A DNA stretch of 64,000 bases from contig NC_092383.1 in the NCBI RefSeq assembly GCF_030028105.1, positions 85,889,921-85,953,920 of the forward strand. The letters are read 5' to 3'. Made by a program: the position numbers and the translations under genes. The notes below the pieces were generated by a model. That model was given only the letters and a program-made list of their open reading frames with translations. It was not told where the DNA came from and did not search any database. Below are positions 8,844 to 36,499 of this stretch, in pieces. How positions within the stretch are numbered: position 1 is the stretch's first letter; every line of letters starts with the position of its first letter. This stretch comes from Mobula birostris (taxonomy: Eukaryota).

Positions 8844-8864
8844 TTAACATCTTGACAATATCAT
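8844..8864 (-). CDS. Receptor terminal coding exon (MILSRC*), short cytoplasmic tail
   Basis: Acceptor ctatctgcag then ATGATATTGTCAAGATGTTAA. Phase 0 matches the TM exon end. The paralogue at 49030-49050 encodes the same peptide with a TGA stop. Confidence 0.7.
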   Translation of the reverse strand: MILSRC

Positions 8865-8978
8865 CTGCAGATAGCTTTGGATTGACCATTGGATAAGGAA
8901 AGGTAAATGTGTTTAAATGTCTTTCCTCAAATGAAAAGTATATTTGGAAGCAAATTCCACTAATGTCCATTAGCCTAC

Positions 8979-9069
8979 CTTAGTTTCTCTTGTGAACCAC
9001 ATGACTGAACTCGTGCCGATCATCAGGAGAGCGAAGAGTACCCAACGACCCACTTCCCATATCATGAAA
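8979..9069 (-). CDS. Transmembrane exon with Arg (activating-type): FMIWEVGRWVLFALLMIGTSSVMWFTRETK
   Basis: ctttgctcag acceptor and gtaggc donor, 91 bp, phase 2 to 0. Paralogue at 49165-49255 is the same length and open. Confidence 0.85.
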
Positions 9070-9138
9070 CTGAGCAAAGAGGAAGAGATACAGAATTGAT
9101 GAGATGAAATGAGATGGCTTTGTGTTTAAAATATGTAC

Positions 9139-9186
9139 CTCCTGTTTCCTTTGTGGAGTGTGTAATGTTGAATCAGGTTCGTGGGT
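9139..9186 (-). CDS. Stalk exon 2 (PTNLIQHYTLHKGNR)
   Basis: cacttgccag acceptor and gtacat donor, 48 bp, phase 2 to 2 and open. 69-bp intron to the TM exon, the same length as in the 49 kb paralogue. Confidence 0.65.
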
Positions 9187-10717
9187 CTGGCAAGTGAGAC
9201 AGAAAACACTGGCTGCAAATAAATATGTCAATCATTTTTTACAAACAATAAAAATTCTACCAAATATTCATGTTCCCAAGTTACAGAAACTACAAAGTTG
9301 AATCTACAAACACACTTAGCTAAAAGTGCATGCAATGCATACCTTCCCGATGGTTATGTGCACCACTTGCCTTAAACCAAGGAAAAGAGAGCAAGCCTCT
9401 TCCATGTGCTCTTTTATACCCAGGATATTTGACACTGGACACCAGGCTGCTAACCAATGGGAAAAGCAGCTGCAGTTGCTAAACTAACTAATCAGGATGA
9501 AAGTGACTTTTGACAATCAGAATAAGCCCCCCACAGGACACACTACCTCTTGAAAGTTGCAACACCCTGCGATCCAACCCTTGTGACGATGAGGATTACC
9601 TTTGTGAATTCCCTATTAAGTTACATACAAAACGCAGTACAATACAATAGTCGTCCCCCAGTACACGACAGTAGTCCACCAGCCTCCCTGTGCCCCAAAA
9701 GGCCACCAGCACCACCCCAGAGTGTGATAGCTAATGAGCTGCTTACTGAATTAACCAATCACAAAGGAAGCGACTTTCAACAATCAGAATAAGCCACGCC
9801 TGCCACTGGAGAGAGTGGAGCAAGGCAAATAACCAGAGCTAGAGCGGTTCATCTAGAAGAGTAAACTAATGTTAACTGAGGGTGTGGTGGGCAACTGATG
9901 ATCATCAGATACAGACCTAATCACTGGGGCTTGGTCTCGGACAAATTAGATCTTTGAATTAGAAACTGCAAAGTGAAAATGGGTTTAGGAATGATAGAGA
10001 AGTTAATAATGAATGGCCTCCATGATACTGAAATATCATCAAAAATCTGATCACATTATTCTCTGGACAACAGTAGATATAGGGAAATTACATTCAAAAA
10101 TTTCTGTAGGACTCACTCACAACAGAAGGTCTGAAATGCCAATAAGAGACTTTGTAAATTGAGGAAAGAATGGGGTAAATCAATCAGGGCAATGAAAATG
10201 ACCACAATAAAATGCAATTATGATGATCAAAAAGATGGAACCATGTAGGAATAATATCAAATAGTTTCAAGACAATGGCAACATCTTGCATTGCGGTCAT
10301 TCATTGATTCTATTATGGTTATTGTATTTACTGAGTATGCCCGCATGAAAATGAATCCCGGGGTTGTGTATGGTGATATATATATACTTGGATAATAAAT
10401 GGACTTTGAAATTTGAAATCGTTTCTTCAATTCATCCAGTTTATTAACATCTCTTCTTCAGCAGAGAACCAAAACTGAACATAATACTCCAAGTATCATC
10501 TCATCAATTGTCTTAAACAACTGCAACATCACCTTCCAACTTGTCTACTCTGGCTGATGCCTAAAGCCTTCTTCACTACTCTGTCTACCCCTGACTCCAC
10601 TTTCAGGGAACCATGTACCTGAGTCACAGTCAGTGTTTGTGAAGTGTCTGAGTGAGATCTTATTTCACCTCTCCATAGAAGGCTTCAGCACATGTTCTGG
10701 AAGATAGAATTTATATA

Positions 10718-11109
10718 CAGTGCTGTGAAAAAGTCTTAGGCAAATGTAAAATAATTCTGTAAAGTGAAGGTGCTTTCAAAAATAATGAAATGAAAAGCTT
10801 CTAACTATCAAAGAGAAGTAAACAGTAAAAAGCTAAATCAAATCAATATTTGGGTGTGACTACCCTCCACCTTCAAAAGTTCATCAATTCTTTAGGTACA
10901 CTATTGTGCAGTGCTAGAAGAAAATTAGCTGGTAGGTTGTTCCAATCTACTTGGAGAACTTGCCACAGCTCTTCTGCAGACTCTGGCTGTTTCAGTTGCT
11001 TCTGTCTTTCCAGGTATTCCCAGACTGCCTTGATGATGTTGAGATCAGGGCTCTATGGGGACCATACCACATGAAACCATAGGGTGCCTAAGACTTCTGC
11101 ACAGTACTG
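10718..11109. mobile_element. Internally deleted Tc1-like DNA transposon
   Basis: TIRs cagtgctgtgaaaaagtcttaggca and tgcctaagacttctgcacagtactg, each flanked by TA. Confidence 0.8.
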
Positions 11110-11772
11110 TAGTGGATGCCCAATGGAAAGTCTCATGGATTTTGTCCGTGTTGTACGACTCTGGCACCATATGATTCTGTTACACAACAGCATGATGTGA
11201 AACCTGAAGTTTAAAGTTCGAAGAAGATTTATTATCAAAATACATATATGTCACCATATTCAACCCTGGGATTCATTTTCTTGTGGGCATACTCAATAAA
11301 TCTACAGAATAATAGCCACAACAGATTCAATTGAGACCGCCCAACTACAGCATTCAACTAGCGTGCAGAAGACAACAAACTATGCAAAGGGAAAAAGAAG
11401 AAATAGTAATAATAAATAAATAAGCAAAAAATATCGAGGACATGAGATGAAGAGTCCTTAAGGTGAGTCCATTTGTTGTGGGAACATTTCAATGATGGGA
11501 CAAGTGAAGTTGAGTGAAGTTATCCCCTTTGTTTATCATCTATCCATGCCAATAATCTACTTCCAAAATAAATACTAATATCATCTTTCATATCTAAGTC
11601 ATTACAGAATATTTAGAGAGGTTGATTTTTCTTGGATTCTCAGGCTTAAAACATGTAAGAGAGCATTGGTTCTACTATTGGTTATAGAACTGTAAACAAT
11701 ATTCTCATAGGCATTCAGTACAAGGAAATAAAATTGTAATTTCCCCTTAATTATCCCTCATAAAGGAGCAGG

Positions 11773-11916
11773 GCCTCAACAGGTTGTGGATATTCGTATG
11801 AAGATAGCATCAGTAATGAGAACATTGTGTCTTTAAGCAGAACTGGATTAAGTGATTTACCTTGCAGTTGGTTCTACTGGAACATCTTCATACGAATATC
11901 CACAACCTGTTGAGGC
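11773..11916. repeat. Perfect 33-bp inverted repeat with 78-bp spacer overlapping stalk exon 1
   Basis: gcctcaacaggttgtggatattcgtatgaagat (11773-11805) is the exact reverse complement of 11884-11916. Confidence 0.95.
11861..11906 (-). CDS. Stalk exon 1 (CGYSYEDVPVEPTA)
   Basis: Strong acceptor ttttctttccttgcctcaacag and gtaaat donor. 46 bp, phase 1 to 2, bridging a phase-1 C2 exon to phase-2 stalk exon 2. Carries a Cys like the stalk exon at 55.7 kb. Confidence 0.7.
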
Positions 11917-12479
11917 AAGGAAAGAAAATTCATTCTCACGTGTTTTCCAAGTGCTGTCAAGCAAAAGTACATGATTAACATGTGGAAACTCATTCCTTGA
12001 GCAAAGGGCTGATTGGTTACATGAAGGCCAGCTCTAGGAGATTTGCTGTTGGGGTCACAACACTCACCAGAGGGATGAACACTGAGTGCATGTGGAGATA
12101 TTGGGCCAAGTACAATTGTTGATAACTTTGAAGTTTCAGACTGAAACCCTTTCTGATGAAGGATCTTGGCCTGAAATGTCTACTGTTTATTCCTTTCCAC
12201 AGATGCTGTCTGACCTGCTGAGTTTCTCCAGCATTTTGTATGTTTCAAAGGTTTCAAAGGTACATTTAATGTCAGAGAATTGTATGCATCCTGAAATACA
12301 TTCTCTTCGCAACGATCCACGAAAACAGAGGAATGCCCCCAAAGAATGAATGACAGTTAAATGTTAGAACCCCAAAGCCTCCCCCCAACTCCCCCCTCCC
12401 ATGTGTAAGCAGCAGCAAAGCAACGATCCCCCATCTTGTTGCTCTTGTTGTACACCATCTCCAGAATTGCTTCTGTTCC

Positions 12480-13545
12480 TGTTCTAATATTGGTCAGACG
12501 AACGTCATTAAACATACATTATGGGAACAGGCCCTTCAGCTCAACTCATTCACACTGACGAGTGTTTTTAACTAATTTGGTCTCACTTGCCTGCATTTAG
12601 CCCACATCCCTTTTCCAGAAATGTTTTAAAATCATTTCTATGGTATCCACCTCTACCAATTCGTTCAGTAATTTGTTCCAGATTACCCCCCCCCCCGCCC
12701 ACTTTCTGTGTAATAAACCTGCCCTTCAGGTCCCTTTTGTAAATAACATAGAACAGTACAACACAATACGTCCCTTTGGCCCATGATGTTATGTTAGCCT
12801 TAAACCAACTCCACAATCAATTTAACCCTTCCCCCTACACCGCACATAACCATCCATGTGCCAGTCTAAGAGTCCCTTAAATGTACCTGATATATTAGGC
12901 AGCATCACGGTAAATCTCCTCTACAACCTTTAAAGCTCCACATCCTTCCTATAAAGAGTTGACATGAAATGAACACTATTGTCCAAGTGTGGACTACCCA
13001 GAGTTTTATAGAGCTGTAACGTTACCTCATGGCTCTTGACTTCAATACTCTGATTAATGAAAGCCAACACAGCATTCACCTTATTCACCATCTTATCAAC
13101 TTGAATGTTACCTTTGAAGGATATTTGGGTTTGGACCCCAATCTCTTGCCAATAACATTGTACTTTGCCTTCAAATTTCATCTTCCAAAATGTATTGCTT
13201 CATTTTTTTTCCAGATAGAACTCCGTCTGCCACTTCTCAGCCCAGCTCTGCATCCTGTCAATGTCCCATTGTAACCTATAACCTATGACAATCTTCTGCA
13301 CTTTCCACTGCACCACCAACATTTGTGTTCTCTGCAAACATGTTAAGCAATCCTTCCACTTCCTCGGTCAAGTCCTTCACTAAAATCACAAAGAACAGAG
13401 GATCCAGAACAGGCCTTCATTAATCAGAGGATTGAGGTCAAGAGTCACAAGATAATTGTGTAATACCAGTGGTCGTCACCACCTGGCAGAATACATTATT
13501 AACTACCACTGTCTGACTTCTGTGAGCAAACCAATTTCAATTGTT
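12480..13545 (-). mobile_element. CR1 LINE ORF2 3' fragments
   Basis: ORF 12930-13181 (AVLAFINQSIE..LQLYKTL..PHLD) is the CR1 RT C-terminus. Confidence 0.75.
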
Positions 13546-14505
13546 AGAGCATCTCAAATGATAAGGCATAGTAACAAGATTAGAATCGGCTAATTTAAAA
13601 TTAGATGCACAGGAGCTTCTTCACAATCCTTGGAATTCTCCACCTGGAAGGTTGTGGAGGCTGGATCAGTGGGGATACTCAAATAAAAACTAGATTTTTT
13701 TGATATACTTCAGGGAATGGAGGACTGTGTGAAAATGGCACAGAATAGCAGAGAAGGCCTGGTATAGATCAGCCAGGATTATATTGAATAATGGACTAGT
13801 CTTCAGAGACCAGCCAGCCAGCAGTGCCCATTCTTCCAGAGTTCTTACACTAACTGCATGTGGCTTAGCCAGTACAATTCTCCCTATTTTCCATGAAACA
13901 AATCACTGGAAACCATTTACAAATCCAAAAGGATCGAGTTTGGGTATTTGCTGTTTTCTAAAGATAAGAAAATCTCAGTCAGCAACCAGAAACATCATCC
14001 ATTTAGACAAAAAGCCACCATTGTCAGCAAGAGCATTTTGCAGACAGGATGCTCTCTGGTGAGGGACTCACTTCTCAGCTACTGAACATGGCATGCTATT
14101 CTCCACAAGACTTGTCACAGTGGAGACAGAATAGTCTAGAAATGTCAGAATGCAGCCTTGAGAGCAAAAGAGATTAACACTCCCAACTCTCCACAACCCC
14201 CACCACCGCTACTTTATCATTTCATGTCAGCCACCGTATGTACAAACACTCCTGTGCCCAGTGTCACTTTATTGGCATACAATCAATGTATATAAGCTAT
14301 CTTATGTATTTATAATTATTGTGTTACTTTATTATTGTGTTCTATATCTTATTGTGTTTTTTGTGCTCCACTGGATCCAGAGTAACAATTACTTTGTTCT
14401 CCTTACACTTGTGTATTGGAAAGAACATTAAGCAATCTTGAATCTTGAAAACGGTACATGATACTCAATCAATCTCCCTAATGATTCACACCCTCCACCA
14501 CTTAT

Positions 14506-14826
14506 CAGTGCTAGTGAATTGAATCACAAAGCTGCAATTGTCTCCTCTGTTGTAGATGGACATGTTCACTATTTCACTAGACTTTGCTCCATGAGTATTC
14601 GAGGCTGTGCAGTAATATTGATGGTGTTGGTGTTTGAAGGATTGGCAACATAGATCCAGTTTACTGGTGTCAGAGATCTTTGAATCCACTGATGAGATGT
14701 TTTCATACCATGCGTATTGAATGGGAAGGGATCCCTGGACAGACTCACAGGACACTGACACGGAGCTCCCACCACACGAGACATTTGCAGGAGACAGAAA
14801 TTGAAGCACAGGAACAGGCACCGGTT
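14506..14826 (-). pseudogene. Ig C2-type exon, open frame but 5' splice site mutated (GT to AT)
   Basis: EPVPVPVLQF..VSCESVQGSLPIQYAWYE..YYCTASN. Acceptor ttccacag is intact. The donor position reads ataagt where paralogues have gtaagt (19812-17, 59068-73). Confidence 0.85.
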
Positions 14827-15329
14827 CTGTGGAAAAGAATCAGTGAACATCAGAAAATCAATAAAGATTTCAGCAGCTCTGCATCTCAGCCAGGGCCTGC
14901 AGGTGGTTGTCTCACCTCTAAATCCATCTGTGTGTCTGCATCCTCCCAGATGCCTGAACCGCCACATCTGCCATTATCCCAAAACACAACAAGACTCTGG
15001 ATCAGGACAGCAGTGATGATACTGAGAATGTGATGTGTCAGTGTGAAAATCAGGGTGCAATCTCTCTCAGCAACAAGGAGACAGTCTCCAGTGGAGTTTT
15101 TAAAAAAATCAATGCAAATATTGTTTTAAGCTGAGAGGTGGGCAATTTAAAGGAGATTTGTGAGACAAGTTCTTTAGCTACAGTGGTGACTGACTGTCAG
15201 GTGAATAGGTGGAACAGATATAACAGCAATATTTAAAAGGCATTTAGACTAACCCACAAAAAGGTAGGCACTGGAATGATTATGGACAATTGCAGGCAGA
15301 TGGAATTAGCTTAGACTGACATCATAAGA

Positions 15330-15830
15330 TCATAGAACTATAAGACATAGGAGTAGAATCAGGCCATTAGGCCTATTGAGTTTGCACCGCCACTCAATAA
15401 TGTTGATATGTTTTCCCTCTCAAGCCCATTCTGCCTCCTTCTCCGTGAAACCTTTGATATCCTTACTAATCAAAAATCTATCAACCTCCACTTTAAATAT
15501 ACCCAATAACTTGTCTTCCACAGCCTTCTGTGGCAATGAAATCCACAGAATCATCACCCTCTGACTAAAGAAATTTCTCCTCTGCTGTGTTCAAAGAGAA
15601 TGTCCTTCTATTCTGAGTCTTTTTCATCCCAGTCTAGACTCTTCCACTGCTGGAAACATACTGTTCATGTCTACTCTATCTAGCCTTTCAATATGCTGTA
15701 CAATGCTGTAGGTTTTGATGAGATCCCATCTCATTCTTCTAAATTCTAGTGAGGAAAGGCTCAGTGCCATCCAACATAGCTCATATATTAACCCTTTCAG
15801 TTCAGGGAACATGTTCAGTGGAACCATGAT
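15330..15830 (-). mobile_element. CR1 3' end in the V-C2 intron
   Basis: EFRRMRWDLIKTY reading. A related CR1 end sits at the equivalent position of the 59-62 kb copy (59880-60330). Confidence 0.75.
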
Positions 15831-16251
15831 GGGCTGAAGGGTCTGATTCTGTGCTGGCTGTTCTTCTTCTGTAATTCATTGCTGTATTTTCCATATGGGA
15901 ATGAGAGAGAGAGAGAAAGAGGGAGGGAGAGAAAATATCCCTGGGGTGAGGTTGGTGTCACTTCTCTGTGATAGTAGGATTATTGGCTTTAGCATGAATG
16001 CAAACCTCTAACAGGGTGACATTTCATACAGTTCAGAGTCAGGAAAATATGCTGAACCTCCCGCTGGAAATCGGTGTCCAGTCAGTGGGACAGACAATAT
16101 GAGTAGGGTTTCCCGACCCCTGCCCACTCAGCACAGGGTTCTTGCACATCTGCTGAGCCTCAGTGTATTCCTGCTGCCCTGACACTCCCCAGAGAAAACA
16201 TGAATCAGACCATCTCGGTGGAGACATCAAGTCAATCAATGAGAAACCTAC

Positions 16252-16566
16252 CGTCAGATATGTTTAGATACACGTCAAACACTGGATGATTTCGAGATAT
16301 TGTAATTCCATATCTGTAAATTCCTGTATCATTAGAGACAAGATTCTTGATAGTAACAGTAAATATTCCCTGGGATGTGTTATCTCTGATTGTCATTCTT
16401 CCATACTGCTCATTTTGCCCCTTTGTATTCTCTGACGATGTGCATCGGCGATCCCACATGCAGCACAAATACTTTGTGTGTGAATGGTACACTGGTGCAT
16501 AGTGACAATCGATTGTGACTGCTCTTCCCACAACTCCTCTTACTTTATCTTCTGCCCATAAAGCAC
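16252..16566 (-). CDS. Ig V-type (CD300/pIgR-like) exon, second canonical Cys replaced by Tyr; possibly non-functional
   Basis: 315 bp, phase 1-1, tttcag acceptor and gtaggt donor. GALWAEDKVRGVVGRAVTIDCHY..KYLCCMWDRRC..DTGIYRYG. Confidence 0.85.
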
Positions 16567-17039
16567 CTGAAACTGAGGGAGAAGTTATTCGGAAAATGGA
16601 CAGGTAAAGTCAAATTTACACAAGATTATTTAATGTCATTTCCTGTACACACGTGTAAGGGAGAACAAAATCATTGTTACTCTGGATCTGATGGAGAACA
16701 AAAAAGTAGAGCTTGGCACATGGAGATTAGCAAGAACTTTGAGAAAGTCTCACATAGTAGGCTGATCTGTAATGTGAGATCATATGGTAACCTAGCTGGA
16801 TGGATACTGAATAGGGTTGGTGGAAGGAGTCAGATTGTGGTAGTGGAGTGTTGGTTTTCTGACAACATCAGACTTTATCACGAGTGGTGTACCATTGAGA
16901 TCAGTGCTGTTATTTGTCATCAATATTGATAATTTGTAATGATAATGTAGGTGGCACAATTAATAAGTTACGGGTGACACTGTAGTGCGTTGGACAGTGG
17001 AAAGAGTGGTCGAAGTTCACAATGGGATCTGGTAACGAA

Positions 17040-17520
17040 ACCAGTGTTCAGACCCATTACTCTGTGCCAACACGATTCCCCCACCTGAGCCCATCCTGTT
17101 TGCTTGTATTTAACCCGTCTCCCTCTCTTTTCGCTACTATCAACAGGTCAAGTTCAAATTCAAGCTTAATTGATATTCAACCATATGAAACAGCGTTATT
17201 CCGGGGCAAAGATGTAAAACACAGTACCAACAGTCACACATAGCACAAGGAACATATAAGATATCAGTAAGATACAGTCACACAAATTATGTAGTCCAAG
17301 ATGCTGAGTCCATGAATGTTGCAGAAATACAGCTTGTTTTCTGTTGAGTGAACAGCGGGGGTCAGCACTGACTTCAACTTGGACACAATGCTACTCCTCT
17401 TCGGGTGGTGCCGACATACTCCAATGCCTTTCTCCTGGATGGCCGTAATGAGGTAACACTGTGTGCTGAGGCTTAGTCTTTGTTATGAGCCAGGCCACGC
17501 TTCTCCCCTGCTATCCACTA
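17040..17520. mobile_element. Rex1/Babar-like LINE fragments
   Basis: The segment cccattactctgtgcc..cccccacctgagcccatcctg recurs upstream of the other V exons (35830, 62940). The rest resembles the Rex1-like sequence at 26.0-26.7 kb. Confidence 0.5.
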
Positions 17521-19530
17521 ATAAATCAGTGAATTGGACTTGCAGCATTCCACATTAATAATGTCCAACATTATATTTATTGAAAAGTGCATGACCAAGC
17601 ATTTTCCAACATTGTATTTCATTTACCACTTTCTTAATCTGTCTAAGTCCTATTGCATCCTGCCTGTTTCCTCAACACTACCTGCCCTTCTGCCAATCTT
17701 TGTATCATCTGCAAACTTGGCAACAAAGCCATCTATTCCATCATCTAAATCATTTATATACAGCATAAAGAGAAGTGGTTCCAAAACTGACCCTTGTGAA
17801 ACACCTCTAGACTCAGCAGCCAACCAGAAAAGGATCCTTTTATTCCCACTTGCTGCCTCCTACCAATCAGTCAATGCTTTAACCATTTTAGTAACCTTCT
17901 TGTAATACCATGGGCTCTTAACTTGGTAAGCAGCCTCATGTGTGGCACCTTGTCAAAGGCCTCCTGAAAGTCCAAATATACTACATCCACTGCATCCCCT
18001 TTATCTATCCTACTTGTAATCTCCTTGAAGAATTCCAACAGGTTCATCAGACAGGATTTTCCCTGAAGGAAACCATGCTGACTTTGTACTATCTTGCCTT
18101 GTGTCACCAAGTACTCCATCACCTCATCCTTAACAATTGACTCTAACATCTTCCCAACCACTGAGGTCAGGCTAACTGGTCTATAATTTCCTTTCTGCTG
18201 CCTTCCTCCCTTCTTAAAGAGTGGAGTGACATTTAGAGTATATCCTTGCTTTTATATTCTAATCCTCTTGAAATGAATGCTAATATTGTATTTATTTTCC
18301 CTACCATCAACTCAACATACAAGTTAACATTTAGGAACTTCTAAATCCCTTTGCACCTCAGATTTCTGAATTTTCTTCCCATTTAGAAATAGTCTGTACC
18401 TTATTCCTTCCACCAGAGTGCACGAGAATACATTTCCCAACAGTATCTACCACTTCTTTACCCATCCTCCTAATCTGTCTAAGTCCTTCTGCAGTTACCC
18501 TGATTCCTCAGCACTACCTGCCCCTCAGCGTAACTTTGTATTGTCTGCAAACTTGGCCACAAAGCCGTCAATACTGTCACCCAAATTATTGACATGTAAC
18601 GTGAAAAGATGCAGTCCCAACACCGGCTTCTACGGAATACTAGGAGTCACTGACAACCAAACAGAAAGGCCCCCCTTTATTCCCACACATTACTTCCAGC
18701 CAGTCAGCCAATCTTCTGTCCATGCGAGTATCATTCCTGCAGTACCATGGGCTCTTACCTTGTTATAACTGTCTCATGTGCAGCACCTTGTCAAAAGACT
18801 TCTAAAGAATCCAAATAAATAACATCCATTGGCTCTTTCTCATCTATTCTGCCCGTTGTTCCTCAAAGGATTCCAACAATTCTTTCAGGCAAAATTTTCC
18901 CTCTAGAAAATCATATATCTCCAAGTACCCTGAAACTTCGTCCTCAAAAAGGGCTCCAACATCTTCCCAGCCTTTGAAGTCAGGTGACCTGTTCCATAAT
19001 TTTCTTTCTTCTGCATTCCACCCTTCATAAAGAGTGGAGAGACATTGGCAATTTCACAATCTTCCAGAATGATTCCAGAATCTAGTCATTCCTGAAAGAT
19101 CACTAGTAATGCCTCCACAATGTCTTCAGCTATCTCTTTCAGAACTCTGGGGTGTAGTCTATCTGATCCAGGTGATTTGTCTCAGCATCTCAAGCATCTT
19201 CTCCTTAATAATAGCAACCACACTCACTTCGACCCCCTGATATTTTTGTAGTTTTGGCTTACTGCTTGTGTCTTTCACAGTCACAACTGACACAAAATAC
19301 TTAAAGAGTTCATCAGGCTTTTCTTTGTCCCCCATTATTATCTCTCCAGCATCATTATCCAGTGGTCTGATATCCATGCTTTCTTCTCTTTACTCTTCAT
19401 GTTTCTGAAACTATTTTGGTACCCTCTTTTATATTATTGTCTAGTTGGTTTTTAAAAGTTTCCCAATTCTTTAACTTCCCACTAATTTTTGCTATATATG
19501 TCCTTCCTTTTGTTTTTATGACAATGTCAT
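17520..19530 (-). mobile_element. CR1 LINE ORF2 fragments (RT)
   Basis: ORF 17871-18161 QHGFLQGKSCLMNLLEFF..VDVVYLDFQEAFDKVPH. Confidence 0.85.
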
Positions 19531-19817
19531 TGTTTTCCAACTCAACACTCTTTCCAGCATCTTCAATGCAGAAGGCAGAAGTATGAATAGAATGCTCCCA
19601 ATTTGTCTGGATGTGCAAGTACAACTGTGTTTGAGATACTCCACATCTTCCAGGTGAAGTGACAGACTAAACTGTTCACAACACTTTATTTCTATCTCAT
19701 GGTGACTGCAATGTGTAGCTTCTACAAATGCAAAGAAATTCCTTACCCTCAGTAGAAGTATAAGAGCAACTGTAACAGAGTAATAAAAAGAAACACTTAA
19801 ATGAAATTAGGACTTAC

Positions 19818-20138
19818 TGGTGCCATTGATTTCTGTCATATAACTGCAGTTCTCTCCTTTGTTGAAGACTGTCACTGTAACTGTTCCCCTGTATTTTTCT
19901 CCAAAGCTATTTGAGGCTTTGCAGTAATAACAATGGTGCCGGTGGTCAAAGGATTGACAACCTAGAGTCAGTTCATTGCTACCTGAGACATTTGGACGCC
20001 CAGATGAGGTTATTTCATGCCATGTGTACTGAATGGGAAGGGATCCTTGGACAGACTCACAGGACACTGACACTGAGCCCACGAGACATGAGACATCTGC
20101 TGGTGACAGATATCGAATCACAGGGGCAGACACACGTT
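19818..20138 (-). CDS. Ig C2-type exon, intact
   Basis: 321 bp, phase 1-1, ttccacag acceptor and gtaagt donor. ERVSAPVIRY..VSCESVQGSLPIQYTWHE..YYCKASN..NCSYMTEINGT. Confidence 0.9.
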
Positions 20139-20588
20139 CTGTGGAAAGAAATTAAGCATTTAGACACTGAATGAACATTTGAAAAACTTCTTCTTCTTCT
20201 TATTCTTCTGCTGACTTAATAGCAGTTGGCCGCCCAACTTAAAGGTGCTTTACTGCCACCAACGAGACTGGAGTGTGGTGTAGAGAATTGGGAAATAGAA
20301 CCCTTACTACTACTTTTCAAATGAAAGCTAAATTACCCTGAAACGTCCTATAGCTTGTAAGTAGTGAAAGTTAATGTTGTGAATTAAAGTTACTCCCATA
20401 ACTTAATAACGTTTTAAATGAAAACTATCAACCCTCTGAGATTATAATAAAGCCTGCATTTGATTTCTTTCAAACTTATATGCTTTACTATATAATAATA
20501 TGTGTTCAAGTTTCATAATGATGGCAAAACCTACACAGCCTAGAGTGATGTTTTCCAACAAGATACAAGGAATAATTAAGCATAGTAT

Positions 20589-21998
20589 TGTCATGGTCTG
20601 GTCCGTGAAATCCGCATTCTGGTTCACGGTCCGGTCCATGTTCCTTATTCCAGGTTTTTCCGGTTTTCCCCAGTTTCTGTTGAGGCAGCTGATTCTCGTT
20701 TGGGCTGGCCTCATAAATAACTTCAGGATTCAGCCTCTGGTTGCTGGATTGTTCCTGTCCAACCTCCCTGTTTGAATCCCTTCCCCTCCCCTTCCTTTTG
20801 TTGCCTTGCCTTGCCTTGCCTTGCCTTGCCTTGCCTTGCCTTGCCTTGCCTTGCCTTGCCTCGCCTTGCCTTGCCTCGCCTTGCCTTGCCTCGCCTTGCC
20901 TTGCCTCGCCTCGCCTCAAGCCTCACCTGTAACCCTCGCCTGCACTGCTGTCAAGTTCCATTGCCAGAGCAAGATAAGGAACTGTCTATCATTGTTTTGA
21001 ACTCTCTCTGTGTCCTCACCTTCACTAGGTAGGTCTGGCCATTTGCAGCTACCTAGTGTTGGGAACTGTCTCTGTATCCATGCCTTTGCTAGGTAGGTCT
21101 GGCCGTTTGCCGCTACCTTGTGTTGGGAAACTGTCTCTCTGTGTTCTATGTACGAGTCCCGGCCCTACAACCTGCTCTCTAGGAGGGGTCCCGGCTCTGT
21201 GTTCCAGGTCTCTGCGTTCCTGTCTCTCCCTCGACCAAGGCTCTGCATTCCTGGCTTTCCCTCAACCAAGGCTCTGCGTTCCTGGCTTTCCCTCAACCAA
21301 GGCTCTGCGTTCCTGGCTCTCCCTCGACCAAGGCTCTGTGTTCCTGGGTCTGCGTTCCTGTCTCTCCCTTGACTAAGTCAAGGCTTCAGGGTCTCATCCA
21401 GTCCTAGCCACGTCCAAGAACCTTGTCCTGTCCAAGCCATGGCTTTGTGTTCTTGTCTTATCCATGTGTCTCACCCAGCCCAGTAGTACCTTGCCCAGCC
21501 TGGTGCTGGGGTTCCCTCGTCCTGTGCTGGGGTTCCCTTGTCCTGTCCAGGAGTCTCACGTCCAGTCCTATTGCCACTCCTCGTCCTGTAGCCACGTCTT
21601 GTCCTAGCCTAGTTCTGGAGTCCGAGCCCAAGTCAAGTCCCAGATTCTGGGTCCTTGCCCAGTTTCTGGCTTGGAGTCCATACCCAAGCCTCGTCATGTC
21701 CTCGCCTAGTTCCGGGGTCCGAGCCCAAGCCAAGACCCAGGTTCTGGCTCCTCGTCCAGTCTCTGGCTCGGAGTCCAAGCCCAGGCTCCTTGTTCCCAGC
21801 TCCATGTCCTGGTTCCGCTATCCTAGTCAAGTCCTAGCCTAGGCCCTTTATCCTTGTCTCATCCAGGGCCTGTGTCATGTCCAGCATTCTTTCTTCCCCA
21901 CTTCCCTTGCTTGCTTAACTCTAGTAGTAGTCCTGTTCCTGGTACTTCAGTGTCTGTGTCTTGTATTTGGGTCTGTTCCCTGCACCCACCTTATGACA
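20589..21998. mobile_element. Solo LTR (1410 bp) with 5-bp TSD
   Basis: Termini TGTCAT..ATGACA, flanked by agtat on both sides (20584-88 and 21999-22003). Internal short tandem repeats. Confidence 0.85.
20803..20916. repeat. (CCTTG/CCTCG)n pentanucleotide microsatellite
   Basis: More than 20 tandem pentamer units. Explains the ARQGK and LPCLA ORFs. Confidence 0.95.
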
Positions 21999-22069
21999 AG
22001 TATGCCTAATTTTAAGTCAAGTCAATATAATTTCTTTCCAAAATGATGGCAAACAATTTTACTGTACGT

Positions 22070-22990: not shown

Positions 22991-23074
22991 CAAAGATTTT
23001 CATGTAACTTCCCAAGAATATCCACATGGACACCTGAGAATATTTTATGCTCAGTCCATAAAAGCATGCAGACA

Positions 23075-24665
23075 TGGTCAATATGCTGATGTGAACAAGT
23101 GCAGAGATACAAATCATCTTCAGTGAAGCATTTTTGTTTCAGCAACTTGATCACTGAACGTCTATAACAATTTGGTGAAGAGGAGTATAAAGGCCATTTA
23201 ACCAATGTGTTTAACCTAATCCAAATCCTGTGCACACCTGTAAATACAATGATGGAATCATAATTTTTTTTTCCAGTCGGTTGCTGGGAAGTTATTCAGG
23301 AACTGAGGATTGATAAGATATTAGTCAGACCGCTCTTGGAATATGGTGAACAGTTTTGGAACCCCTATCTATGAAAGGAGGTGCTGTATTTGGAAAGGGT
23401 CCAGAGGAGGTTCATGAGAATGATCACAGAAATGAAAGGGTTAACATATAAGGAGTGTTTAAAGGCTCTTGGCCTGTACCTGCTGGAGTTTGGAAGAATG
23501 AGGGGGAAATTTCATTGAAACCTCCAGAGTAGTGAAGGGCCTGGAACCTTGATGGAGTGTGTCTGGAGAGGATGTTTCCATTGGTGGGAAGTCTCAGACC
23601 TGATGACACAGCCTCAATACAATAACATCCCTTGAGATCAGAGATGAGGTGAAATTCCTTGGTGGTGAATCTGGGAAATGCATTGCCACAGAGGCCAAGT
23701 GATTGGGTATATTTAAAGTGGATGTTGATAGATTCTTGATTGTCGTAGGTTATGGGGAGAATGGGGCTGATGTGGATAATAAATCAGCCATTATAGATTG
23801 GTGGAGCAGACTCAATAGGCTGAATGGCCTAATTCTGTTCCTGTTGTATCGTTTTGTGGTCTATGGCCTTAAGTGATGGAGCAATGCAAGAAGGTGATGC
23901 AACAACTTGTTGACGTGAGGCATCCATTGGAACTACCCTGAATACTGTCTCATGAGCTCAAAAGTTCCAGCCGTATCCTTTGTGGATTGCTTTGAGATGT
24001 CCTTGGAAAGGAAAGGAGTCCCTTTCAGAATCAGAATCAGGTTTATTTTCACTGTCTTCTGATGTGAAATTTGTAGTTTTGCAGCAGAAAATATATAGCA
24101 AGTTCTATCCCTCAGACCATTAATGAGCTTGGGTGAAACAGGTCTGGATTCACAAGTGGGAGCACTGCATCTAGAGCTATCTGCAGATAATTAACACCTT
24201 GTAGATAACCCTGACCTGAAGAGCTCATGAGCTCCATCAGGTTCCGGTGTTTTTGCTTCACATCCTCACACAGCAGGTGAAGGATATTGTGCCATATTCC
24301 TCCTTGTCAGTGAGGCATTTCAAAGTTCAAAATACAAATTAAATGTATTATCAAATTATGAACATGTCATACATGTCACACTACTATACAGTTCACCTTC
24401 TCTCCTTTTCAAGACCCTTTATTTTACATTAGTGGGTCACCGTCACAGATAGGAACTGAGAAAAGTTACTCCTTCTATTTGCAGATTCACGTCCTGATGA
24501 CCAAAGCAAGCTGCAATAATTTGCAGCTTACTCGTTTTATTCAGCACCCAACTTTTATTTCCATTGCTTGTCTCCTTTAAGACCTTTGTATAGTGACTGG
24601 AAATTTTCATGCTAGTGTCTCTTTCTCATTCCATTTCTACAAAATAGGACAAGTAGGAGATTCTG
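23075..24665. repeat. Segmental duplicate of the block upstream of the leader exon (paralogous to about 36520-37930 plus 39580-39845)
   Basis: Colinear similarity, e.g. aatatgctgatg.gaacaagtgcagaga, a shared CR1 end, and gtttttgcttcacatcctcacacagcaggtgaag at about 24250 and 37730. Confidence 0.85.
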
Positions 24666-25999
24666 TGCCTATCCAAACTTCTCTTAAACATTGTAATCAA
24701 GCTTGCGCGGACCTTTGTGCTGGCAGCTCATTCCACACTCTCATGACCCTCCGAGTGAAAAAGTTTCCCCTCATGTTCCCCTGAAACTTCTCGTTTTTCT
24801 CTTTTTAACCCATGACCTCTGCTTGTACTCCCACCCCCAACCTCAGTGGAAAAAGCCTGCTTGCAAATACATGTAATTATTATACAATTACATCCTTCCA
24901 CAAATTAATGTTTCCTAGGCAGGAACATTCTCTGCAAAGATTATCCTCACCACTGGTGCCAGACCAAGATGTGTCTTCAGCTCTGTTCTCTCCTGCCTAA
25001 ACACTCACTACTGTAGTTTGGATTCTGCTCCTTTCCTCCCCCAACTCTCCAGCCCTGTAGCAGGGCTTCCAGCTGGAAAACCTTTTGCCTCCATGGATAC
25101 TATTGGACCCATGCAGTGTGTCTGTCGTTCTACACCCCAATATTGCTGAATATGCTGTATTTATGAGTATTTTCTGTCTTTACATATCTGCACATACTTT
25201 TCCATTTCTGCTACAGAAAGGTTGCACTAAACCCAAAACACTGATCATTCGAATGAACAAGAAAATGGCAGATGTTGGAAATCTAATACATAAACAGAAC
25301 GTGCTGGGAAATTTGTGTATGTCAGGCAGAATCTCTGGGAGATGAAACAGGGTTATCGATTTAAGTCAAAGGGTGTCAGGTCTGAAATATTCACTGTTTC
25401 CATTTCCACAGTTGCAGCCTGACCTGCTGAGTATTTAGACCATAAGAAATAGGAGTAGAAGTGGGCCATTTGGCCCATCAATTCTGCTGCACCATTCAAT
25501 CATGGCTGAACCAATTCTTCCACTCATCCCCACTCCCCTGCCTTCTCCCCATACCCTTTAATGCCCTGGCTAATCAAGAACCAATCTATCTCTGCCTTAT
25601 ATGCACCCAATGACTTGGCCTCCACAGCCGCTTGTGGCAACAAATTCCACAGGTTTACCACCCTATGACTAAAATAATTTCTCTGCATTTCCAGCATTTT
25701 CCGGTCTCTGTAATGTCCCGTGCCTACTGTTGCCCACATTGCAGGCTTCCCCTCTCCAGCGGCCTCACAAGAGTTGCCAATCAGCATTGAACTCAGCATA
25801 GGACTGGAATAGGGACACCAGGCTCTGGATACTTCCCAAGCCTTACCCATGAGTGAGTGTAGCTGCAGGGCAGCAGAGGTTTGAGTTGTGGAGTCTTCCA
25901 GAGGAAGTGATTGAGGCAGGTACAAAGTACTATTTAAAAAACACTTGGATAGATACATGAAGGGGCAGAGCTCAGAGATATGTGGGCTGAATGTAGGAA

Positions 26000-29310: not shown

Positions 29311-29319
29311 TCTCCTTCT

Positions 29320-30170
29320 GCAACTCTCCAATCCTAGGGAACCTCTCCCATTCCCTTTGATGAGGCAAAAATCATTGCCAGAAGCTCAGCAGTCTCCTCC
29401 CTTGCCTCCCACAGTAGCCTGGGGTATATCTCCTCTGGTCCCAGTAGTTTATCCAACTTGATGCTTTCCAACAGCTCCAGTACATCCTCTTTCTTAATGT
29501 CTATATGCTCAAGTTTTTCAATCCGCTGTAAGTCATCCCTACAATTGCCAAGGTCCTATTCTATAGCGAATACTGAAGCAAAGTATTCATTAAGTACCTG
29601 TGCTGCCTCCTCCGGTTCCATACACGTTTTTCCACTGTCATACTTAATTGGTCCTATTCTTTCACGTCTTATCCTCTTGCTCTTCATATACTTGTAGAAT
29701 GCCTTGGGGTTTTCCTTAATCCTGCTCGCCAGGGACTTCTCATGGCCCCTTCTGGCTCTCCTAATTTCATTCTTAAGCTCCTTCCTGCTAGCCTTATAAT
29801 TTTCTAGATCTCCATCATTACCTAGTTTTTGGAACCTTTGGTAAGCTTTTCTTTTCTTCTTGACTAGATTATCAACAGCCTTTGTACACCACGGCTCCTG
29901 TACCCTATCATCCTTTCCCTGTCTCATTGGAACATACCTATGTAGAACGCCATGCAAATATCCCCCGAATATTTGCCACATTTCTGCTGTACATATCCCT
30001 GAGAACATTTGTTCCCAATTTATGCTTCCAAGTTCCTGTCTGATAGCTTCATGTTTTCTCTTACTCCATTTAAACATTTTCCTAAGTTGTCTGCTCCTAT
30101 CCCTCTTCAATGCTATGGTAAAGGAGATAGCATTGTGATCACTGTCTTCAAAATGCTCTCCCACTGAGTG
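29320..30170 (-). mobile_element. CR1 LINE ORF2 fragment (endonuclease-RT linker)
   Basis: ORF 29556-30182 (GEHFEDSDHNAISF..KENPKAFYKY). Confidence 0.85.
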
Positions 30171-31844: not shown

Positions 31845-32770
31845 CACTCAGTGGCCACTTTATTAGATACAACTATACACCAAATCGTTAATGCAAATAT
31901 CTGATCAGCCAATCAGCCAGTCAGCAACTCAATGCAAAAAATGCATTGCATAAAAGCATGCAGACATGGTCAAAAGATTCAGTTCTTGTTCAGATCAAAC
32001 ATTGGAATGTGGAAGAAATGTTACAGAACAAAAAACATCCAGTGAGCGGCAGTTCTGTGAGTGCAAAAGTTTGCTAATGAGAGAGGTCAGAGGTGTTGGA
32101 AACCACTGCTTTTTAAAATAACACTTTTATAGAAGATTTGTACTTTTCAACAACTCATGTATTTTTCACAGTATGTGGTGATTCATCACTACTCACTGGC
32201 ACTTATTGGCAGAAAGCGGTATAGCAGTTAAGCTAACGGTGTATCAGCTTTCTCATTTTTCATTGGGCTAAGTATTAGCACATTACCAACATGATGTAGT
32301 CTATAAATTAGTTTATCTTTATCTGAGAAATTTTCCTTAACTATAAAAGTGATGGGTATTTCAGAGGCACAATTTTCTTGTCTTTACATTCTTTGCTGTT
32401 CATTTACCTCTTTGCAATGTTTCTCCACTCTGTATTTAGTTTGCTGAGTATTTGTATGTGTGCTTGTACTTTAAAATAGGTGATCATTAGAATTAAGATT
32501 GCTCATCATTCCTGACCCCCAGAAGAACCCTAAGGATCAGAAAATAAACAGAGGTCCGATAGAGGACAATGGCCAGACTGGTTCAAGCTGACAGGACAAC
32601 AACAGTAACTTAAATAACCATGCGTTACAACAGTGGTATGCAGAAGTACATCTCTCAATGCACAGCACATCAAATGTTGAAATGGATGGGCTACAGCAGC
32701 AGAAGCCTACAAACATACATTCAGTGGCCACTTTATGAGGTACAGGAGGTACCTACTAAAGTGGTCACCA
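31845..32770. mobile_element. Tc1-like non-autonomous element with an internal LTR-like insertion (about 32095-32530)
   Basis: cactcagtggccactttattag start and a palindromic cagtggccactttatgaggtac..gtacctactaaagtggtcac end. Confidence 0.5.
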
Positions 32771-32888
32771 AATATATAATACAACAATAAGTCAAGGATG
32801 GAGAAATAAACAATGTAGATTGAAGTAAGCAATTTCCCTAAAAATCAACACAAGTTTCCTGTGCAGTACCAGGAGAGAAAGCTTTCTG

Positions 32889-33101
32889 TTAGGGGTTTGC
32901 GGGTTGGTTTTGAAATTTGATATCTGCATCGATAACGTTGTCCTCATCAGTAACGGAGTGTACTGCTCTTGATTACCTTTTATATTTCACGTCTGCATAC
33001 ACAATTCAATTTTCATTGTTAGCCAATTGGGCAGCTGCCTCAGCGTTTTGAACATGGTGTAGATCTGTATAAATGATATTTTCTTCCAACGTGGCTACTT
33101 C
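32889..33101 (-). pseudogene. Orphan ITIM-bearing cytoplasmic terminal exon of an inhibitory receptor
   Basis: Acceptor ttctttatttcag. Phase 0 reads EVATLEENIIYTDLHHVQNAEAAAQLANNEN*IVYADVKYKR*SRAVHSVTDEDNVIDADIKFQNQPANP*: two ITIM consensus motifs, a degenerate third, and 2 internal stops. Confidence 0.8.
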
Positions 33102-34312
33102 CTGAAATAAAGAATAAATTCACAATGTATCTATGACTGATGGATGTGAAAGGTTACAGGGAAAAGGCAGGAACATGAGATGAAAAGATAAACAAATCAG
33201 CCATGATTGAGGGGCAGAGCTCGAAGGGCCGGAAGTGCCTATTCTCTGCTGTAGCTCAATTTAAATCAATCTATAAATATAGGAATAAATATTGCCTGGA
33301 TTGGAGTGTATTAGCTGTGGGCAGAAGTTGGACAAACTCAGATTGTTTTTGCTGGAGTGTTGGAGAGATCTGTGAGAAGTCTAAAATGTTATAGAAGGTA
33401 TAGATAGGGAAGATAATAGGAATCTTTTTTCCAGGGTTGAAATATTAAATAATGGTATTAATAATAATAGTTTGAGGGTGATCGTGGGAAAGTTTAAAGG
33501 ACGTTTGCGAGACAAGTTTTGTTTTACACTGCGGGTGGTGACTGCGTGGAATGCACAGTCAGACCCGCTGGTGGAAACAGAGACAATAAGGTGCTTTTGG
33601 ACATGGACATGAAAAGAGAAGGTTTGGAGGGATCCGGACCACATGAATTAGCTTAGAATCACTTCATGGTCAGTGCAGACATGGTGGGTCATGGAGTCCA
33701 TTCTTGTGCTGGACTGTGTCCCAAGTTCTCTCTAATTCCATTGCCCTATTTCCCACCAGGAATCGGTCTGATGGCGAGTCTGGCTGCCGGGAAATGGATG
33801 GTCAGTGGGTGCTGGGGGGTGGAGTATTGGAGCACATTGATGGGGACAGATAAAAAGAGCACAGAATAAGGGACGGGGTGACTGATCCATGAAACAGGGA
33901 TGGGATGTGGAATAGTCTGCCCTGGGAGGACTGAACACAGTCTGTTTAGCGCTGAGAACTGATTCCCTTTTTATGATTTTCAAGTTATTTAGATCTTGAG
34001 TAACACTTGCTTCTCATCGACCTGTTATTGTTGGATTACTACTTTTCTGAATGTAAATCTTTGACATTTCATACAGTTCAAAGACAGGAAAATATGCTGA
34101 GTTTCCTACTGGAAATTGGTATCCAGTCAGTGGGTCAGACCCCACACTTAGTGAAAGAAACATGGCTGGAGTTTCCCGACTCCTGCCCACAGCCTGCAGT
34201 GCTCTGAATGGCTGTGGAGCTTCAGGATATCCATGCTGTCCTTACCTTTCCCAGAGAAAATATGAATCAGACACTTCAGTGGGGACATCAAGTCAATCAA
34301 AGAGAAACCTAC

Positions 34313-34627
34313 CGTCAGATACTTGTAGATGCACGTCATACACTGGATGATTGCCAGATGTTGTAATTCCACATCTGTAAAGTCCTGTATCATTAGAGAC
34401 AAGATTCTCCATAGTAACAGTAAATATTCCCTGGTATGTGTTATCTCTGATTGTCATTCCTCCATACTGCTCATTTGTCCCAATTGTATTCATTAACAAT
34501 GTGCATTGGCGATCCCACATGCGGCACAAATACTTTGTGTGTGAACGGTACATTGGTGCATAGTGACAATCGATTGTGATTGCTCTTCCCGCAACTCCTC
34601 TTACTTTATCTTCTGCCCATAAAGCAC
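34313..34627 (-). CDS. Ig V-type (CD300/pIgR-like) exon, intact
   Basis: 315 bp, phase 1-1, canonical splice sites. IDCHY..KYLCRMWDRQC..DTGLYRCG has both Ig Cys plus the CD300-type C-C' Cys pair. Confidence 0.92.
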
Positions 34628-35049
34628 CTGAAACTGAGGGAGAATTTTTTCAGAAAATGGATAGGTAAAATCAAATTCACTCAAGCAGATTCTAGATAGT
34701 TTAATGTCACTTCCAGGACCTAAGTGCAAAGGAGGACAAAATACTTGTTACTTTGGATAGAATGCTGCTCACAAAAATAAGCACAATTGATAAAGAACAC
34801 AATGTGAAAAGTTGTTTTATTTAAAGCTGTCACTGCATTCTAAGGAATCTACCCGCTGTCAATTGGTACAATTGAATTCCACATTAAACTTAGAAGACAA
34901 CAGCATTGTCCCTCATCACGTGCTCACAGCTCTTCATAAGTAATGATTTTTATTTGATTGGAGTCATCATTATCACTGCCTACTAATGTCTCGGTGTGTT
35001 TCTACATTTCTGAGTCAATAGATTACTGATCCAGTCCCATTCCAGGCAG

Positions 35050-35800
35050 GTGAGCATAAGATCAGTGGTGGGTAACTTACTGGAGGTGATTGTGTGAAAC
35101 AGGATCTACCTGAAATTGTAAAGGCTAGATCTGATTTTGGATTGTCAACATGGTTTTGTGCTTGAGAGATTGTGTCTCAAAAAAAATGGACTGAGTTTAT
35201 GTGAAGAGGTGACCAAAAGGACTGATGAGGACAGGGAGAGGGTTCAGAGAAGATTCACAAGAATGATTGCAGGAATGAAAGGGTTACTATATGAGGAACA
35301 TCTGGCAGCTCTTGGGCTGTATTCCCTGGAGTTCAGGAGAATGAGGAGGGATCTCATAGAAACATTCCGAATGTTAAAAGGCCTGAACAGATTAGGTATG
35401 GCAAAGTTATTTCCCATGGCAGAGCAGACTCGATGGGCCAAATGGCCTACTCTGCTCCTATATCTTACGGTCTTATGACAATAGAGGTTAGCACACGGAG
35501 ATCAGCAACGTCTTTGAGAAAGTTTCACATAGTAGACTGGTCTGTAATGTGGGATCACATGATAAGCCAGAAGGATGGATACTGAATAGGTTTGGTGGAA
35601 GGAGCAGATTGGTAGTGGAACGTTGTTTTTCTGACAACATCAGACTTCATCACCAGTTGCGTGTTGTCGGAATCAGCGTTCTTATTTATTAACCAGATAT
35701 TTATCATCTATATTGATAATTTGCAATTGTAATGTAGGTGGCATGATTAATAAATTGTGGGTGATATTGTAGTGCAGTGGAAACAGCAGAAGTTTACAAT
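35050..35800 (+). mobile_element. CR1 ORF2 fragments with a younger CR1 3' end nested at about 35230-35480
   Basis: SVVGNLLE..QHGFV reading. The older part is shared with 62400-62880 and partly 16690-17010; the nested piece is absent there. Confidence 0.7.
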
Positions 35801-36423
35801 AGGATCTAGAAAATAAACCGGTGTTCAGCCCCATTACTCTGTGCCAGCACGATCCCCCCACCTGAGCCCATCCTGTATGCCTGTATTTGACCCATCTCCC
35901 TCTCTTCTCAGTACTACCATCGAGAGGGAGGAGCAGGATCCTGGGTCCTATGCCAGGACCAGTGTCACCCTCCTCTGCACTGAACTGACTCTGCAGCTGT
36001 GGACTCAGTTTCGGGGACTCTGAGATCATGTTCCATGTATTATTTATTTACATATTTTTATTATTTGCATGATTGATCCTCTTTTGCACATTGGACATTT
36101 GTCAGCCTATGTTGTATGCTGTTTGTCATGGATTCTATTGTGTTATTTTGTTTTGTGGATGTCTGCTAGAAGATGAATCTCTAGGTTGTTTATAGTCATA
36201 GTCATACTTTATTGATCCTGGGGGATCACTTTGGGTTTGTTACATTTGTTTCAGGGGAAAGCAGTGCAGTATATTAGCCATGAATGTATATCTGCTTAAA
36301 TTCTGTACATTGGGATATAGTATGAGAGCTGACTCTGTTGCATCAGTCACTGCTGTCCTCTGTGTAATTTTCACCCTCAGCAAAAGATGTGGTTCGAACT
36401 TCTGTCTTCTTTATTTATCTTAC

Positions 36424-36499
36424 CAAAGAAGATACAGAGAAGTACCAGTAGATGCAATATATAAACAATTTGTTCCACCCTCTTCCTGCATTGCCCCAT
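36424..36499 (-). CDS. Signal-peptide (leader) exon MGQCRKRVEQIVYILHLLVLLCIFF(G)
   Basis: ATG in gcgATGg context, basic n-region plus hydrophobic h-region, gtaaga donor. Phase 1 gives ..CIFFG-ALWA-EDKV with the V exon 1.8 kb downstream. Confidence 0.75.

Follow-up and report, generated by a model that had tools for sequence, protein, structure and literature searches.

Does the immune-receptor locus on the minus strand of Mobula birostris contig NC_092383.1 still encode a working protein, or do its surviving exons only happen to fit together? The locus occupies about 8.3 to 36.5 kilobases (kb) of a window of 64,000 nucleotides (nt), which is the whole stretch of DNA analysed (RefSeq assembly GCF_030028105.1, positions 85,889,921 to 85,953,920 of the forward strand); all coordinates below are those of the window. 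A first-pass annotation had proposed that a complete activating receptor of 305 amino acids (aa) can be built here only by splicing exons from different broken paralogues, in a chimeric gene rescued after deletions had fused three tandem copies. That description is accurate at base level but over-read. To obtain a full receptor, the front of one gene unit has to be combined with the body of another, and the locus is probably a deletion-made hybrid, now inactive or nearly so, of two neighbouring tandem genes.

Judged by its sequence, the span belongs to a tandem cluster of genes from the cartilaginous-fish modular domain immune-type receptor (MDIR) family, annotated by RefSeq as “polymeric immunoglobulin receptor-like”. 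According to PMC3031540, MDIRs form multigene families in which both activating and inhibitory receptors have V domains like those of CD300, TREM and pIgR, and their original description in the clearnose skate is cited there as reference 35 (Cannon et al. 2006, Immunogenetics 58:362). The exons involved encode V-set and C2-type immunoglobulin (Ig) domains, a stalk, a transmembrane (TM) segment, a cytoplasmic tail and, in one case, immunoreceptor tyrosine-based inhibitory motifs (ITIMs). Read along the minus strand, the features of the span are as follows.

39734-39829, minus strand: relic of an alternative 3′ tail exon with two stops, the end mark of the preceding gene
36526-37971, minus strand: upstream (intergenic or promoter-side) block of the upstream unit, with an interspersed repeat inside (about 36750-37340)
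36424-36499, minus strand: 5′ or leader exon, ATG at 36499, GT donor at 36423-36422
34313-34633, minus strand: V34k, an intact V-set exon of CD300/pIgR type, tandem acceptors at 34627 and 34633
32856-33104, minus strand: relic ITIM cytoplasmic exon of an inhibitory-type gene, two in-frame stops
23073-24665, minus strand: second copy of the alternative-tail relic (24543-24638) plus upstream block, a duplicate of 39.9-36.5 kb
19818-20138, minus strand: C2A, an intact C2-type Ig exon of the first-position type, ending ...CSYMTEINGT, GT donor
16252-16572, minus strand: V16k, a V-set exon with an open frame, acceptors at 16566 and 16572, second Ig cysteine replaced by tyrosine
14506-14826, minus strand: C2B, a C2-type Ig exon with an open frame, donor AT (14505-14504)
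11861-11906, minus strand: stalk exon of 46 nt, homologue of the family stalk GREYSCETFTTVS
9139-9186, minus strand: second stalk exon of the first-pass annotation, probably no real exon
8979-9069, minus strand: TM exon of activating type, with the invariant GRW motif and an arginine within the membrane span
8844-8864, minus strand: tail exon of the first-pass annotation (MILSRC-stop), unsupported, in the intron between the TM and conserved tail exons
8676-8723, minus strand: conserved terminal coding exon, KPDESDLHRLVYKVK-stop, phase 0, acceptor TTTTACAG, intact

The division of this span into two ancestral units begins with a duplicated gene boundary. The alternative-tail relic and about 1.4 kb of upstream block occur twice in the same order, at 39856-36526 and at 24665-23073. 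Positions 24389-24665 match 39582-39856 at 86%, and 23073-24467 match 36526-37971 at 77%, colinearly, with the first copy interrupted by a Penelope-like insertion. Homology ends at 36526 and 23073, a point that lies 27 nt before the leader ATG. Past the break at 23073 the second copy shows no leader remnant, and neither a leader nor a first-type V exon can be detected from 24.4 to 20.1 kb. Tandem repeats (periods 5, 31, 50, 64 and 97) cluster at 20801-21781 and occupy the site where the leader and first V of the downstream unit would be expected. The two tail relics (39734-39829 and 24543-24638; …HEHFQSQYRGLKGEQGMEIKAGC) represent an exon used in Mobula hypostoma models, the first of them being 62% identical to the C-terminus of the M. 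hypostoma proteins P0155/P0083. Both share the same in-frame stop, and the exon was therefore already broken in the lineage before the block was duplicated.

The upstream unit comprises the block at 37.97-36.53 kb, the 5′ exon at 36.4 kb, the V exon at 34.3 kb, the ITIM relic at 33.0 kb and the alternative-tail relic at 24.6 kb. The downstream unit comprises the block at 24.47-23.07 kb, followed by C2 (19.8 kb), V (16.3 kb), C2 (14.5 kb), stalk (11.9 kb), TM (9.0 kb) and tail (8.70 kb) exons and by AATAAA signals at 8306 and 8280 (8.3 kb), past the conserved tail exon. With a duplicated boundary block and a leaderless downstream unit, the span therefore resolves into two truncated, mutually complementing units. 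Of the proposed chimera, the derivation of the exons from more than one ancestral unit stands, whereas the count of three does not: the duplicated boundary block delimits two units. The dependence of any complete receptor on the 36.4-kb leader also holds, the downstream unit having none of its own. The body running from C2 at 19.8 kb through V, C2 and stalk to TM and tail is colinear with a paralogue further upstream at 62-48.5 kb and is the normal 3′ body of one canonical gene, not a set of pieces from different copies.

These observations suggest the following history. The upstream unit (36.5 to about 24.5 kb) would have been of inhibitory type, and what is left of it would be its 5′ exon, a single V exon and the dead ITIM exon. 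Its downstream neighbour, at about 23 to 8.3 kb, would have been an activating gene that lost its own leader and first V and kept C2-V-C2-stalk-TM(Arg)-tail with open frames. A deletion would have produced the hybrid from these two neighbouring tandem genes, such that the open exons, taken in genomic order, recreate the canonical four-Ig activating layout in a predicted protein of 512 aa.

Comparison with the family supports the layout and most of the exon assignments. An exhaustive profile search and a word-index search retrieved 251 family proteins, the best matches being “polymeric immunoglobulin receptor-like” proteins of rays and sharks (Hemitrygon, Hypanus, Mobula, Rhinoraja and Amblyraja). 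The clearnose-skate Modular domain immune-type receptors 5 (P0170) and 2 (P0198) are also among these best matches. The highest identities are to Mobula proteins, and none of the retrieved proteins exceeds 87% identity to any Ig exon of the span. V exons match Pfam V-set (2.7e-9) and the solved structures of pIgR (7.7e-45), CLM-1/CD300F (1e-14) and TREM2 (5e-6). The C2 exons match FcRL5 (2.4e-27), and their Pfam Ig_3/Ig_2 matches fall under the gathering scores.

Full-length activating members (P0153, P0155, P0157, P0158 and MDIR5 P0170) measure about 500-560 aa and follow a common order: leader, first-type V, C2 (...CSYVTEINGT), second-type V, C2 (...NCSFVI...), the stalk GREYSCETFTTVS, a TM segment containing ...FMIWKVGRWLLF... 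and the tail KKPDESDPPRVVYKVK. The exon order V-C2-V-C2 of the locus is the same as that in P0153, P0155, P0157 and P0170. The 512-aa model aligns end to end with the four-Ig activating members (P0153, 69% over 508 aa; P0155, 67%) and with skate MDIR5 at 54% over P0170 residues 1-501, its whole length (502 aa aligned, E = 2e-180). Individually, V34k is 86-87% identical to the second-type V of P0171 and P0003, C2B is 79% identical to P0153, and C2A is no more than 70% identical to any retrieved protein. The ITIM relic is 69-72% identical to the tails of P0171 and P0008; MDIR2 matches the V, C2 and ITIM exons, its tail aligning with the relic. The signalling ends are of two kinds, the charged TM segment with GRW marking the activating type and the motifs IIYTDL and IVYADV the ITIM relic, which is broken by its stops. 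GRW itself yields 34 motif matches, mostly in the TM segments of family proteins, with a variable K/E position before it.

The leader exon encodes MGQCRKRVEQ followed by a hydrophobic core of 15 residues. The exon is colinear, at 44% identity, with residues 1-27 of P0190 (MGQSRKRVEE...), a family protein from Hemitrygon, and the two canonical methionine positions of the family leader are isoleucine and valine in the 36.4-kb exon. A candidate signal-peptide exon between this leader and V34k, a “WISNLL” match at 35016-35033, was judged to be a chance match; it lies in a 16-nt insertion missing from the paralogous copy. An inverted copy of the leader exon with a stop (MEQCRQMLEQFVYMRYPLVLP*ILF, 52% identical) is found at 37340-37414 on the plus strand, about 840 bp upstream of the real exon and at the edge of the interspersed repeat.

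Could the locus instead be a single ancestral four-Ig gene without any fusion, in which a segmental duplication later inserted the ITIM exon, the tail relic and the upstream block into the long second intron? The exon order matches a canonical protein from end to end, and family genes are long, with that of M. hypostoma P0171 spanning 23 kb. Moreover, P0152 and P0005 also have a second-type V in first position. Against this, the ITIM exon comes immediately after V34k, which matches the arrangement in inhibitory P0171 (V-TM-ITIM within a V-C2-V-TM-ITIM layout), and the duplicated block stops exactly where a leader should follow, so that it resembles a truncated gene start and not a chance insertion. 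The intron preceding V34k is also homologous to the introns in front of every other second-type V exon, even that of the V exon located after a C2 exon. A single-gene origin is consequently regarded as improbable. An inhibitory-type TM exon was found nowhere in the window, including the interval between V34k and the ITIM exon.

The 305-aa product can now be placed within this probable deletion-made hybrid. Its seven minus-strand exons have the coordinates and lengths reported, with an AG acceptor and a GT donor on each internal exon, and they form an open reading frame of 918 nt from the ATG at 36499 to a single terminal stop, with junction residues G/E/S/R/S. What does not follow is that this is the only path, as nine of nine exon paths built proved to be open. 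Nor does an open frame require the damaged exons to be skipped: the genomic-order path leader-V-C2-V-C2-stalk-TM-tail keeps both V16k and C2B and is open over 512 aa. A path that skips just the dead-donor C2B and keeps V16k gives 405 aa, and the 305-aa path itself, once its second stalk exon is dropped and its tail replaced by the conserved one, gives 298 aa, both open.

Two exons of the 305-aa path are doubtful in themselves. Neither the stalk at 9139-9186 nor the tail at 8844-8864 has a counterpart among the 251 retrieved family proteins. In the 2.8-kb intron that holds this stalk, 87 AG..GT mini-exons, the stalk among them, are open and keep the phase, and 13 of the 87 have a decent pyrimidine tract. 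Omitting the stalk keeps the frame and restores, by a direct join of the first stalk exon to TM, the family junction ...EPTA-S-FMIW..., and the conserved tail at 8676-8723 is intact. The exact 305-aa isoform as the main product is mechanically open, with AG/GT at each junction, but it finds no RNA support in the runs examined and is very improbable; it is an arbitrary path, one of many through the phase 1-1 cassettes. An open frame threaded through such exons is weak evidence of a transcript because many such paths exist. Shorter receptors do occur naturally in the family, among them P0195 (305 aa, V-C2-TM), P0152 (V-C2-V-stalk-TM, Hemitrygon) and P0003 (C2-V-V-stalk-TM).

The phase compatibility of the Ig cassettes is real: V exons of 315 nt and C2 exons of 321 nt are phase 1-1 throughout. 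Their use as cassettes is the already described “modular domain” hallmark of the family and not new. The 46-nt stalk exon differs in leading from phase 1 to phase 2 and is therefore required by every in-frame product. Tandem acceptors 6 nt apart (CTCAG/TTTCAG/GT) precede every second-type V exon. The upstream one (34633 and 16572, 6 nt before that of the first-pass annotation) is the choice of family proteins and of paralogue RNA contigs and yields the conserved “(V/I)SG” junction, “(V/I)SG-ALWAED”.

How badly is the locus damaged? Exon translation and donor comparison bear out three lesions already recognized in the first-pass annotation. The ITIM exon reads ...EENIIYTDL...NEN*IVYADVKYKR*..., with stops between and after the ITIM-like motifs. 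In V16k the codon of the second Ig cysteine (about 16311) has changed from TGT to TAT, giving YRYGI where paralogues have YRCGI; the exon is otherwise open. C2B ends in ...CACTG/ATAAGT where the other two C2 exons have /GTAAGT, a GT-to-AT donor change. In addition, a perfect 33-bp inverted repeat (11773-11916; arms 11773-11805 and 11884-11916, 100% complementary) encloses the acceptor, the entire exon and the donor of the stalk. The corresponding hairpin in the pre-mRNA has a computed folding energy of −70.3 kcal/mol (z = −11), with the acceptor and the start of the exon paired, and may be a further obstacle to splicing. Two other candidates were set aside as lesions. K-to-E before GRW in the TM exon was rejected, as family members have K, T, E, S, N or M there, and the loss of a stalk cysteine (GREYSCE to GCGYSYE) was not counted, P0003, P0151 and P0152 also being without it.

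Expression was assessed in assembled contigs from three same-species runs (RNA-labelled set X8-X11) and one run of a close relative, same-species runs being those of the organism that DNA runs identify as the source of the window (share 0.87); such contigs drop rare variants, their tissues are unknown and one run may be DNA, and the joints and positions considered are those listed. Across 14400-20200 at 90% likeness, the contigs over V16k carry 12-15 foreign letters per 124-179 nt, which indicates a paralogue origin. At most listed V16k positions a foreign letter is found in every contig, the window letter being kept by some at 16393 and 16413, and the single listed C2-to-V joint (16572 to 19820) shows mismatches where the exons meet. 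Across 32800-34740 at 95% likeness, V34k is covered by short contigs only, with contig ends at 34633-34635, and the depth over the ITIM exon and intron is zero. At V34k positions 34371, 34381 and 34435, all covering contigs of the three same-species runs have the foreign letter. Loose ends decode to paralogues: SYVTEINGT upstream, where the window has SYMTEINGT, and downstream a stalk, G-REYSFTTVS, that is absent from the window. These paralogue transcripts, whose depths reach hundreds in the same RNA runs, confirm the C2-to-V and V-to-stalk splicing of the family.

From the locus itself, the listed joints and loose ends include neither a leader-to-V link (36424 to 34627/34633) nor a V-to-C2 link (34313 to 20138), and the window's own leader or C2 letters are in none of them. 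Words from 8400-9200, covering TM, tail and 3′ untranslated region, occur in none of the four RNA-labelled runs listed in the word index. The rescue proposed for the chimera is thus not borne out, no joined transcript being seen in these contigs. It is because of the dead C2 donor, the lost Ig cysteine, the hairpin over the obligatory stalk exon and this lack of own-locus RNA that the hybrid is presumed to be inactive or nearly so.

Several observations weigh on the other side. The eight exons in canonical order provide 513 codons without stops or frameshifts, where relics elsewhere in the window are broken (the ITIM exon, the V exons at 62 and 49.8 kb of the upstream paralogue, the inverted leader copy and the two alternative-tail copies), a contrast compatible with selection or with a loss in the very recent past. 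Skipping C2B gives V-C2-V-stalk-TM, the layout of the real Hemitrygon protein P0152. The RNA evidence is weak, consisting of assembled contigs from three or four runs. Finally, V34k and V16k (34314-34625 against 16253-16564) are 91% identical within the exon and about 58-75% identical in the flanks, yet 28 of 28 base differences fall in amino-acid-changing codons. The ratio of non-synonymous to synonymous rates (dN/dS) by the NG86 method is about 8, and a random-hit simulation left no synonymous-only codon in just 0.07-0.4% of runs (P ≤ 0.004 under neutrality). From the sequences, the pattern points either to diversifying selection at the protein level or to conversion from paralogues under selection, and looks like exon-limited gene conversion plus diversifying selection. 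A dN/dS comparison of retained and skipped exons, which had been suggested as a check of the chimera, does not separate the two V exons: with V62k and V49.8k of the upstream paralogue as outgroups, the derived amino-acid changes split into 11 for V34k and 12 for V16k, with zero synonymous changes.

Several of these points also speak for a live fusion gene. Transcription would run from the 36.4-kb leader through the old boundary, V34k would be spliced to the downstream C2, and at least one working activating receptor would result, most likely a V-C2-V-stalk-TM product of 405 aa with the dead-donor C2 skipped and the conserved tail exon last. Apart from the open exons, the P0152 layout and the non-synonymous V differences, such a gene is favoured by a downstream unit without another leader and an upstream unit without a working 3′ end, which would favour read-through. 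What speaks against it is the silence of the listed leader-V34k and V34k-C2 joints where paralogues are abundantly covered, the absence of own-locus letters and of TM and 3′ words just described, the missing cysteine of V16k and the hairpin over an acceptor that no in-frame product can avoid. The 14-kb intron required for the fusion would, furthermore, contain a relic 3′ exon and an upstream block. A live fusion is therefore possible but unlikely. The more specific proposal of a newborn activating receptor, in which a gutted inhibitory gene supplies the 5′ end that drives read-through into an activating gene with no leader, and a dying donor removes one Ig domain, is rather doubtful.

The hybrid locus can be compared with known receptor systems at three levels. 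It shares with MDIRs the pairing of CD300/pIgR-like V and C2 domains in alternating modular order, as well as the presence of activating (charged TM) and inhibitory (ITIM) forms in one multigene family. It departs from them in lacking a leader and a first V of the usual type, in its second-type V in first position, and in its dead C2 donor, lost cysteine, relic gene boundary within a long intron and lack of expression in the runs examined. With the mammalian CD300/pIgR/FCAMR group, the locus has in common the V type and paired activating and inhibitory members. However, CD300 has a single V and pIgR only V-like domains, and the interleaved FcRL-type C2 domains of the locus are foreign to those mammalian genes.

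Hybrid receptor genes arise through unequal crossing-over in paired-receptor clusters, as exemplified by human FCGR2C and the KIR hybrids. FCGR2C has a 5′ part like the inhibitory FCGR2B and a 3′ part like the activating FCGR2A, and is often a pseudogene. In like manner, the Mobula locus places an inhibitory-type 5′ end before an activating-type body, lies in a tandem cluster with many dead relics and has a coding state on the border between gene and pseudogene. In contrast to these hybrids, it keeps the old gene boundary inside an intron, so that joining the two parts needs read-through splicing in place of a clean recombinant junction.

Further upstream in the window lies a second member of the cluster, with colinear family exons.

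48868-62009, minus strand: upstream paralogue, activating type, decayed
61695-62009, minus strand: its V exon (V62k), with a 17-nt deletion
59075-59386, minus strand: its C2 exon
55702-55782 and 55282-55341, minus strand: its stalk pieces
49672-49857, minus strand: its V fragment (V49.8k), with a stop, a gap of 12 nt and the 3′ half truncated
49165-49257, minus strand: its TM exon, 97% identical to M. birostris P0156
48868-48912, minus strand: its tail exon

This paralogue looks dead too, despite the 97% TM identity to a protein of the same species. Transposon remains abound in the rest of the window. One repeat, about 300 bp long and resembling a short interspersed nuclear element (SINE), occurs in at least nine places and in both orientations, and has very high depth in the RNA-labelled contigs (for example at 15370-15563).

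6099-6273, 7857-8169, 15320-15620, 23625-23862 and 25437-25691: copies of the SINE-like repeat
37027-37334, 53294-53605, 56478-56725 and 59885-60193: further copies of the SINE-like repeat
45697-46944 and 44476-45003, minus strand: transposon open reading frames
37936-38634 and 42939-43559, plus strand: transposon open reading frames

The transposon reading frames include one of 415 aa with a complete RVT_1 domain (9.6e-39) and a zf-RVT piece, representing the reverse transcriptase of a long interspersed nuclear element (LINE), and a GIY-YIG type that is Penelope-like. A further one contains GDSL-lipase and endonuclease pieces and is CR1/L2-like.

What the locus mainly documents is ordinary birth-and-death turnover in a known receptor cluster of rays and sharks. 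Should it prove to be expressed, it would provide an activating receptor made of an inhibitory front and an activating body in one of the oldest jawed-vertebrate lineages, and a case of domain loss through a splice-site mutation. If the newborn receptor were indeed live, the locus would capture, in nature, the way “modular” receptors acquire and discard domains, and the wholly non-synonymous divergence of its two V exons would point to ongoing ligand-driven selection within one gene.

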